From Haliotis cracherodii (lineage: Eukaryota), in contig NW_027266286.1 of NCBI RefSeq assembly GCF_022045235.1, positions 50,902,001 through 50,966,000 of the forward strand: a stretch of 64,000 nucleotides of DNA. The letters run 5' to 3'. The notes beneath the pieces are model-generated. The model saw nothing but the letters and a program-made list of their open reading frames with translations. It made no database searches and was not told the DNA's origin. A program made the translations under genes and the position numbers. Below are positions 38,772-40,027 of the stretch, piece after piece; position 1 is the stretch's first letter, and each line of letters opens with the position of its first letter.

Positions 38772-40027
38772 GTTTGAAGTTCGAGTGGTTGGCCTCCTTC
38801 AGCTTGATTTCAGCTGAGGCCACCTGGTTGCGAGCGACAGGTCCGAGGGGAGGAGGGTTTCTTAAAGCAAAGCTGATTACTGCTTCTTGCTGATCTTGGT
38901 GTAATATGTGGACACGATCTATGGGGGATCCAATGTCTGGAGCGATTGAGCACGAGCAACATGTAACCATGAGTGATTTGAATCGAATGTGACACACTTC
39001 CCCACAGACGGCCCGGCTGATACTCCGGAGGCGCGGACGTCGGAGGAGACACCTTGCTTGTTGTGGCTGATAGCTGCACGCTTACAAGCGCGTGTGCTTT
39101 TTCGTGTATTTGTATCCGAATAATCACTTCTTAATCAAGGAAAGTTTCAATTTCAACAACACTGTTAGGTAGTAAAAACATTTGGCTACATTTCGGTTAC
39201 AATAGCAACACTCACGGGTGAAGTTCAAAGCCACACGTGATGTTTCCAATGAAGCGACCCAGTCTAAATTGTAGACATCGCTACTTTCAAAAGCTCATTT
39301 TTAGCCTTGAGACTCAAGTTTTTGCATTTTAAACGTTGCCTGTCAATTCTCAATATATCTAACTATGAAAGTAAAACACAACACTCATCAGTATTGTCTA
39401 TGATAAGCTAGAACAAGCGTTCAAACAACGACAATGAAGCACGTTTTTCTGACGACTTCGCCATTTTGCAACAGAAAACATTTGACAGTATATTTCTGGA
39501 AACATAATTTTGGTCACTTCAATAAAGTTGAAACTAACTTTGTCATAACAAGTAAGTAACGGGGATTTTACTTTCAGGAAAACAGTCTACTAAGACGAGG
39601 ATCTCGGGACACAAGCACTTAGGGCGCGAAGCCCCGAACAGTTACATATATACATAGGTGTTTAGATCACTCGATCGGTCGTCACAGATTAAGTCTTTTT
39701 GCCTGTCTTAATAGCACGATATTAGTAGGGGTCTTCGTCGTTTGGATGTTAATATTACCAGAACAATATAGGCTACCATGCATCAACGAAAAGTGAATGT
39801 TTCAGACGAGAGGCCGGATCGAGTGAGCGAGTGTGTCGGGCCTCGTGTTAAACAGTGATCACATGTTTTTACAATAGATTTTGTAGATTTTAATCCCTGT
39901 AAATATACATCATAAATCAACAAACACAACATGTCTACTGAACCCGCTGAAAACGCGAGCATGCTGTTTTCATGGCAATGTCTTTTTACCAATGTGCGGT
40001 GTCTATATGTAGCTAAAGTTTGCCGCT

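Follow-up and report, generated by a model that had tools for sequence, protein, structure and literature searches.

The H1/5S array and its insertions

The window, i.e., the whole 64,000 nt of Haliotis cracherodii DNA that was analysed (G000:C23:50902001-50966000), carries a tandem gene array from about 26.9 kb onwards, with a repeat unit of 3.01 kb. Each unit pairs one minus-strand histone H1 gene with one divergently placed plus-strand 5S rRNA gene, situated about 1 kb upstream of the former; core histone genes are absent from the unit. At least 82 units are present in the assembly. The array covers window positions 29966-64000, extends over 50.93-51.15 Mb of G000:C23, and is also found on contig C39. 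The H1 protein is 187 aa long (174 aa in some units) and matches the Pfam family Linker_histone (1.9e-29), and the gene has a histone 3′ stem-loop. The shorter variant is found around LINE copies A and B (32484-33008, 41371-41895 and 44350-44874) and represents a local sub-array type, with the 187 aa form elsewhere (e.g., 53603-54166); the H1 reading frames behind the LINE are still open. One 5S copy (52260-52378) has a lower score, 95.9 versus 111.5 bits.

Three inserts (A, B and C) interrupt the array, all on the minus strand, i.e., in the same orientation as H1 (Table 1). All of the 26 further H1 units that were sampled are empty (26/26), and in an empty unit the minus strand reads GGGGAAGTGT followed directly by CATTCGCTCT, with the ATG 65 nt downstream. 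The H1 start site referred to here is the predicted position, at the cap-site hexamer CATTCG. The motif at the TATA position of the H1 promoter is TATCAGCC. Its T is followed after 18-19 nt by the first-strand nick and after 30 nt by the predicted +1; as a sequence the motif is a poor TATA box. Downstream of the start, GACGTG is found at +29 to +34 (numbering from the A in CATTCG), in the register of a DPE. The TATCAGCC motif occurs twice in the H1 promoter, at 39065-39072 and 39015-39022 of the minus strand (50 nt apart, at about −80 and −30), and its complement has a GATA-type core inside.

Table 1. Positions of the LINE copies, their junctions and neighbouring H1 sequences in the window.
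Feature	Position	Strand	Remarks
LINE copy A	33080-38989	minus	(GACT)n tail at low end; 5′UTR 38772-38989
Copy A ORF2	33619-37428	minus	1269 aa, shorter than in B
Copy A ORF1	37425-38771	minus	448 aa; 350-nt internal gap relative to B
Copy A hexamer CATTCG	38984-38989	minus	first six element bases
Copy A extra GTCA	38990-38993	minus	between duplication and hexamer
Copy A target-site duplication GGGGAAGTGT	38994-39003 (5′ copy), 33070-33079 (3′ copy)	minus	
TATCAGCC	39015-39022	minus	TATA-position motif of H1 promoter
CTCCGACGTCCGCGC	39031-39045	minus	motif in H1 proximal promoter
Displaced H1 behind copy A	32400-33069	minus	hexamer 33064-33069, CDS 32484-33008, stem-loop 32400-32445
LINE copy B	44946-51210	minus	longest copy; duplications 51215-51224 and 44936-44945
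Copy B ORF2	45288-49295	minus	1335 aa; APE, RT, RNase H
Copy B ORF1	49292-50992	minus	566 aa; without Pfam family
Copy B hexamer	51205-51210	minus	
Copy B GTCA	51211-51214	minus	
LINE copy C	26933-29871	minus	internally deleted; 3′ flank not H1
Copy C hexamer	29866-29871	minus	
Copy C flank, H1 upstream DNA	29872-29968	minus	
Copy C flank, preceding unit	29969-30103	minus	H1 5′UTR and 25 codons
LINE fragment D	1025-2003	minus	about 1 kb; another subfamily of the same LINE
H1 upstream DNA next to fragment D	2004-2630		adjoins D at about −126
Empty target, example	54228-54237, then 54222-54227	minus	GGGGAAGTGT, then CATTCG

Structure and classification of the element

Copy B is the only copy seen with both long ORFs, and it resides in the H1 array. 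Pfam searches with ORF2 gave Exo_endo_phos_2 (5.6e-18), RVT_1 (3e-42) and RNase_H (6.7e-15), and the Atlas neighbours show the same three domains. The closest matches in a database protein search with ORF2 are 32-39% identical (39% for the best), and a search of other assemblies with the ORF1 protein gave a single weak match. Typical LINE hallmarks are present, namely duplications of 10-12 bp at four sites, the (GACT)n tail, and truncated copies (L043-L045). With its ORF1, an ORF2 carrying APE, RT and RNase H domains and a (GACT)n tail, the insert is an APE/RT/RNase H LINE of the I/jockey-like type. The gaps in ORF1 extend from one point, at about element position 1490 (about 49722 in B), and measure 350 nt in A, 187 nt in C and 257 nt in a copy on C1, which points to a length-variable stretch inside ORF1 near element position 1490.

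The earlier note had found no 5′ HDV-like ribozyme in this element, in agreement with an Rfam search for HDV-like ribozymes that was empty for the element at the gathering score and even at E ≤ 1. Its accompanying claim, that the other LINEs of the window have such ribozymes, holds only to the extent that HDV-like matches do exist, but all are sub-threshold. These matches (6716-6772 and 17221-17277, plus strand; 26 bits, E 0.8-1) open another repeat family (6718-7030, 7561-7861 and 17223-17532), and this family is probably what was meant by the other LINEs.

Junctions at the predicted H1 start site

Most of the junction features reported in the earlier note were recovered. The letters of the junctions on the minus strand are as first read, and the first six bases of the element, CATTCG, are the H1 cap-site hexamer. 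The junction of copy C, which in full is GTGTCATTCGATTC, restores the H1 start exactly (GTGTCATTCG), and in A and B the element starts 4 nt further downstream, with GTCA inserted before the hexamer. The length given for the 5′UTR (218 nt) also agrees with the position of the ORF1 ATG, at 38771 in A and 50992 in B, and the H1 CDS, said to be displaced by about 6 kb from its upstream DNA, is found to be 5.9 kb (A) and 6.3 kb (B) away. One statement did not survive, that copy C is preceded by intact H1 upstream elements: just 97 nt of H1 upstream DNA are left, with 3 substitutions, and a deletion at a GCT microhomology has fused these to the preceding H1, at its codon 25.

The 5′ joint of A and B consists of GGGGAAGTGT, GTCA and then CATTCGATTC, and at the 3′ joint GGGGAAGTGTCATTCG, from the displaced H1, comes after the tail; the duplication at these copies is 10-11 bp. 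The extra GTCA could be made up of the CA of a 12-bp duplication, GGGGAAGTGTCA, and a GT slip in its 5′ copy, which together would produce the 4 nt shift of A and B, while the 5′ joint of copy C may have used the shared CA. The first 1490 nt of A and B are 100% identical; to judge from their sequence, the two are a single insertion that was duplicated with the array.

Origin of the CATTCG hexamer

The hexamer is found on both sides of the insert at the H1 sites, as would be the case if it were part of a 16-bp target duplication and lay outside the element, which would then start ATTCAAATC. This is very improbable. C1, a different chromosome, carries a full-length copy (C1:45277848-45283632, 97-98% identical) that has its own 12-bp duplication, ACTATCAATTTA, after which it starts with an untemplated G and CATTCG, so that the hexamer lies inside the copy, in a target that is hexamer-free. 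The C1 copy rules out the 16-bp duplication unless it arose by 5′ transduction from an H1 site, in which case this explanation merges with that of an H1-specialised element, discussed below. Since the C1 copy has its own duplication and the hexamer is absent from its target, CATTCG was carried in the LINE RNA. On C3, an unrelated dispersed repeat is followed immediately by a diverged copy whose first bases are GTCATTG (GTCATTGATTCG), indicating that a CATT-type start is old in the lineage. The first bases are of initiator type in all of these copies: CATTCG in A/B, C and C1, and CATTG in C3.

For sea-urchin histone genes, the classical cap-site consensus is PyCATTCPu. The initiator (Inr) consensus of Drosophila is D-TCA-K-T-Y-G (PMC1636488), and GTCATTCG matches it at 8/8 positions; with their flanks included, the element starts match the Drosophila consensus at 8/8 positions in copy C and 6/8 in A/B. 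Internal promoters at the extreme 5′ end drive the transcription of most LINEs (PMC1636488), and Drosophila jockey, Doc, F, G and I have internal Pol II promoters of this kind, with an initiator at the first bases and a downstream element near +29 to +36 (PMC1636488, PMC4180977). The abalone LINE has a sequence at +28 that fits the DPE functional-range set at 6/6 positions and the extended consensus at 5/8, a match that is not retained in the diverged copies L062 and L063; another DPE match (7/8), at +32, is out of register. Because the H1 cap site and the LINE start both fit the Inr consensus, the shared hexamer is best read as two initiators of one consensus, rather than as a copy of H1. The proposal that the element mimics and replaces the H1 initiator can be retained in part, as a sense-oriented LINE does occupy the H1 initiator position, but CATTCG is not a private copy of the H1 sequence.

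Size and distribution of the family

In the 1.18 Gb genome, the family is represented by six 5′ ends and about a dozen close 3′ ends. L062 (G000:C23:36093400-36103399) resembled a fifth 5′ end but was left out, since the copy is rearranged and an inverted ORF2 piece lies immediately upstream; its arrangement at 276-1858 resembles a twin-priming inversion. Fragment D is 95.6% identical to L062 and 93% to copy B. In the first 1.49 kb, the C1 copy and A/B share 7 derived sites, compared with 2 and 2 for the other groupings. From these sequences, it would appear that either A/B and C were independent insertions at one nucleotide, or that a lineage resident at H1 was the source of the C1 copy.

The 3′ junctions of the family occur at no fewer than eight (≥8) unrelated non-H1 sites, and there is one full-length ectopic copy. 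Strict specificity for H1 is ruled out by these ectopic junctions. The H1-type module is strongly preferred as a target, though the family also inserts elsewhere. Although the family is small, at about a dozen close copies, A/B, C and a member of subfamily D all reside in the H1 array, so that the presence of the LINE in H1 is probably not due to chance, and this promoter type is hit by the family far above chance expectation. Three of the 3′ ends (L039, L045 and L047) adjoin one position of another repeat (TCACTTGCTTGATAA; cf. L053:1374), a shared flank that represents either recurrent insertions or a duplicated composite.

An element specialised for H1 would have evolved its hexamer to replace the H1 initiator and would depend on H1 upstream DNA, its other copies being dead-end daughters of source copies resident at H1. 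Under this explanation one would expect the copy with both long ORFs to reside in the H1 array, as copy B does, and the C1 copy to nest with A/B. The at least eight insertion sites outside H1 are difficult to reconcile with it, as is the diverged C3 relative, with its CATT-type initiator behind a non-H1 repeat. The H1-type module accounts for 3-4 of about 14 insertion events, and the lack of a 5′ ribozyme would suit a dependence on host upstream DNA, but the hexamer is a generic Inr consensus and, once carried in RNA, letters of the LINE itself and letters derived from H1 are inseparable by sequence. Taken together, such specialisation is unlikely.

Geometry of insertion and the promoter module

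The geometry of insertion could be read at four sites with both flanks readable, plus one 5′ junction. The pattern CGACGTCCGCGC-N8-TATCAGCC (20 bases) occurs 83 times in the whole genome, comprising 60 array units on C23, 22 on C39, and one site on C80. The C80 site (L044) carries a 5′-truncated member of the family with the duplication TAGCGTGAGTGC; the nick is 19-20 nt after TATCAGCC, and CGACGTCCGCGC precedes at the same 8-nt spacing as in H1. The chance that any of about 12 random insertions would fall within 30 nt of the C80 site is about 3e-7 (an arithmetic estimate). Two sites, C1 and L043, have an AATAAA that begins 21-22 nt before the nick. The duplication is 12 bp long at three sites. 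From the nick distance and the duplication length, the first base of the LINE lies 30-34 nt behind the motif, the usual distance between a TATA box and the start of transcription. No insertion was seen behind the second TATCAGCC of the H1 promoter, at −80.

Guidance by a generic TATA box was considered and set aside, as the TATAAA score in the −24 to −17 window of the four sites is not significant by itself (n = 4; p = 0.07 at two sites and p = 0.37 at two, Fisher about 0.07). What the data can show is a strong preference for a promoter-like module at fixed geometry, whichever letters or bound protein may guide it.

At both C80 and C3 the target belonged to one dispersed repeat family, with each insertion placed shortly after its TATA region, and the H1 promoter has only a 15-nt motif in common with this repeat. 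More extended homology between the two was not found by a profile search, which was empty, or in pairwise comparisons, with scores near the shuffle maximum. The dispersed repeat is about 330 bp long, with at least 176 candidate copies, and has CTCCGACGTCCGCGC followed by a TATAAAA-like box (L063:7378-7560, upstream of L044, and L067-L077). The CTCCGACGTCCGCGC 15-mer, which the H1 promoter shares with this repeat, has 247 occurrences genome-wide.

Chance combined with amplification of the array was also considered. A LINE with a self-sufficient internal promoter would have landed at the cap site, been tolerated there because the array is redundant, and spread by unequal crossing-over, with the hexamer representing microhomology at the 5′ joint. 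A and B are indeed duplicates, arrays tolerate insertions, and the 6-nt overlap in copy C is typical of microhomology; the generic TATA test, not being significant, is also in line with this explanation. Against it, the sole copy of the module outside H1 in 1.18 Gb is also occupied, and at the same offset (about 3e-7), and one short segment of a dispersed repeat received two insertions. A/B and C could share one old insertion, copy C having lost its 3′ flank so that its duplication is uncheckable, but C and A/B are unlike in junction, tail length and lineage, and subfamily D is also in the array. Overall, an origin by chance is improbable.

A model for insertion at core promoters

The explanation we favour, and regard as probable on balance, is that of a LINE with its own initiator that integrates with fixed geometry on core-promoter-like DNA, the H1 module being preferred. 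The element RNA would begin with its own initiator-type CATTCG and meet, at H1, an initiator of the same consensus. Nicking would begin on the template strand, some 19 nt past the TATA-position motif (TATCAGCC in H1), and the second cut would follow 10-12 bp further on, after which the 5′ joint could use the shared CA or CATTCG letters. Landing at the H1 +1 would then result from the fixed distance of the nick from the motif together with the 10-12 bp duplication. The first base of the LINE would come to lie about 30-32 nt downstream of the motif, in promoter orientation, and the displaced H1 copy would retain just the initiator and a DPE-like element.

A wider version of this model is more tentative. 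In this version, the lineage would read Pol II core promoters in general, nicking about 19-21 nt past the TATA-position element and cutting the other strand 12 bp further; its own initiator would replace that of the host, copies would be born behind a promoter, and the active H1 array would be a preferred launching site.

For the copies in the array, it is plausible from their position that the element has captured the H1 promoter, H1 upstream DNA then supplying or boosting transcription from the first element base. Such transcription may give a capped element RNA with histone-like timing, as the earlier note proposed. LINEs face the problem that a promoter upstream of the start is not copied into RNA and is lost at each jump. 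The known answers are internal promoters, co-transcription with processing by a ribozyme, and homing restricted to a single host gene. If the model is true, integration at a fixed distance behind a core-promoter motif, with the element's own initiator at +1, would be a further answer, and a case of LINE integration guided by a Pol II promoter. Each insertion also parts an H1 gene from its upstream elements, so the array, with its filled and empty units, offers a natural series for examining what the H1 promoter needs.

Comparison with other retrotransposons

The element resembles the jockey and I LINEs in its APE and RT domains (and RNase H, as in I), its first bases of Inr consensus and the lack of a ribozyme. 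It differs from them in that it lies behind a host promoter motif at what appears to be a constant spacing, that upstream DNA may contribute to its transcription, and that its candidate DPE-range match at +28 is weak and unconserved.

SLACS, CZAR and CRE reside in the spliced-leader genes of trypanosomatids, a few nt past the start, and are transcribed from the host promoter. The abalone LINE is similarly placed at or just after the Pol II start of a tandem gene, where the host promoter could drive it. However, SLACS, CZAR and CRE are strictly site-specific, have a restriction-like endonuclease, and their promoter use has been demonstrated, whereas we infer it for the abalone element.

Other target-specific LINEs include R2 in 28S genes (co-transcribed, and with a 5′ HDV-like ribozyme), Mutsu in 5S genes (PMC5340908), and Utopia/Keno in U2 genes (PMC4640811). 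Like R2, Mutsu and Utopia/Keno, the abalone family is found repeatedly, and in sense orientation, at a single nucleotide position of a tandem multigene array. Unlike these, the abalone family is not confined to the array, has an APE rather than a restriction-like endonuclease, is ribozyme-free, and has a Pol II promoter as its target instead of the body of a transcribed RNA gene. The abalone LINE is therefore outside the strictly target-specific class, and outside the ribozyme-processed (R2) class.

Integration guided by host factors is known for Ty3 (via TBP/Brf1, at Pol III starts), DGLT-A and TRE5-A (at tRNA genes), and Tf1 (via Atf1, at Pol II promoters) (PMC6101501, PMC5391098). As in Ty3, TRE5-A and Tf1, the position and orientation of the abalone LINE appear to be set by a promoter element and not by a long recognition sequence. 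In the literature searched, no LINE was described as guided by a Pol II core promoter. HeT-A is an example of 'promoting in tandem', in which a neighbouring element provides the promoter from its 3′ end (PMC1636488). The abalone RNA may likewise depend on a promoter that lies upstream of where the element begins, but here the candidate promoter belongs to a host gene and not to a neighbouring element. With moderate confidence, given that the family is small, the abalone LINE can be described as a variant that combines a jockey/I-like 5′ end, a possible upstream dependence like that of SLACS and HeT-A, and apparent positioning by a promoter element like that of Ty3 and TRE5-A.

Transcription and possible polymorphism at the H1 site

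Four runs were examined, as assembled contigs only, with window positions 26900-31100, a segment that includes the H1 start region and the junction of copy C and is free of 5S sequence. None of the runs recorded as RNA contained this DNA. In run X1, from a close relative and probably of RNA, the depth was 38.6 over the first 1.45 kb of the element versus 15 over the H1 spacer. The DNA run X14 gave depths of about 112 for the element versus about 5000 for the H1 spacer. From the depths of element and spacer in X1 compared with X14, the element or a near relative is probably transcribed in the X1 organism. The X1 element contig departs 19 nt from the element 5′ end into 125 nt of unlike sequence; this extension is absent from the abalone genome, and its first 30 nt are without a match.

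In X1, a contig of H1 stops at the duplication edge, 11 nt upstream of the hexamer CATTCG, and another extends a single base into the hexamer before it ends. These ends are most simply explained as assembly-graph branches at a polymorphic insertion site, and hint that the same H1 site is polymorphic for insertions in the related organism. The breaks in the X1 contigs flank the 11-12 nt that form the duplication (window 30103-30114).
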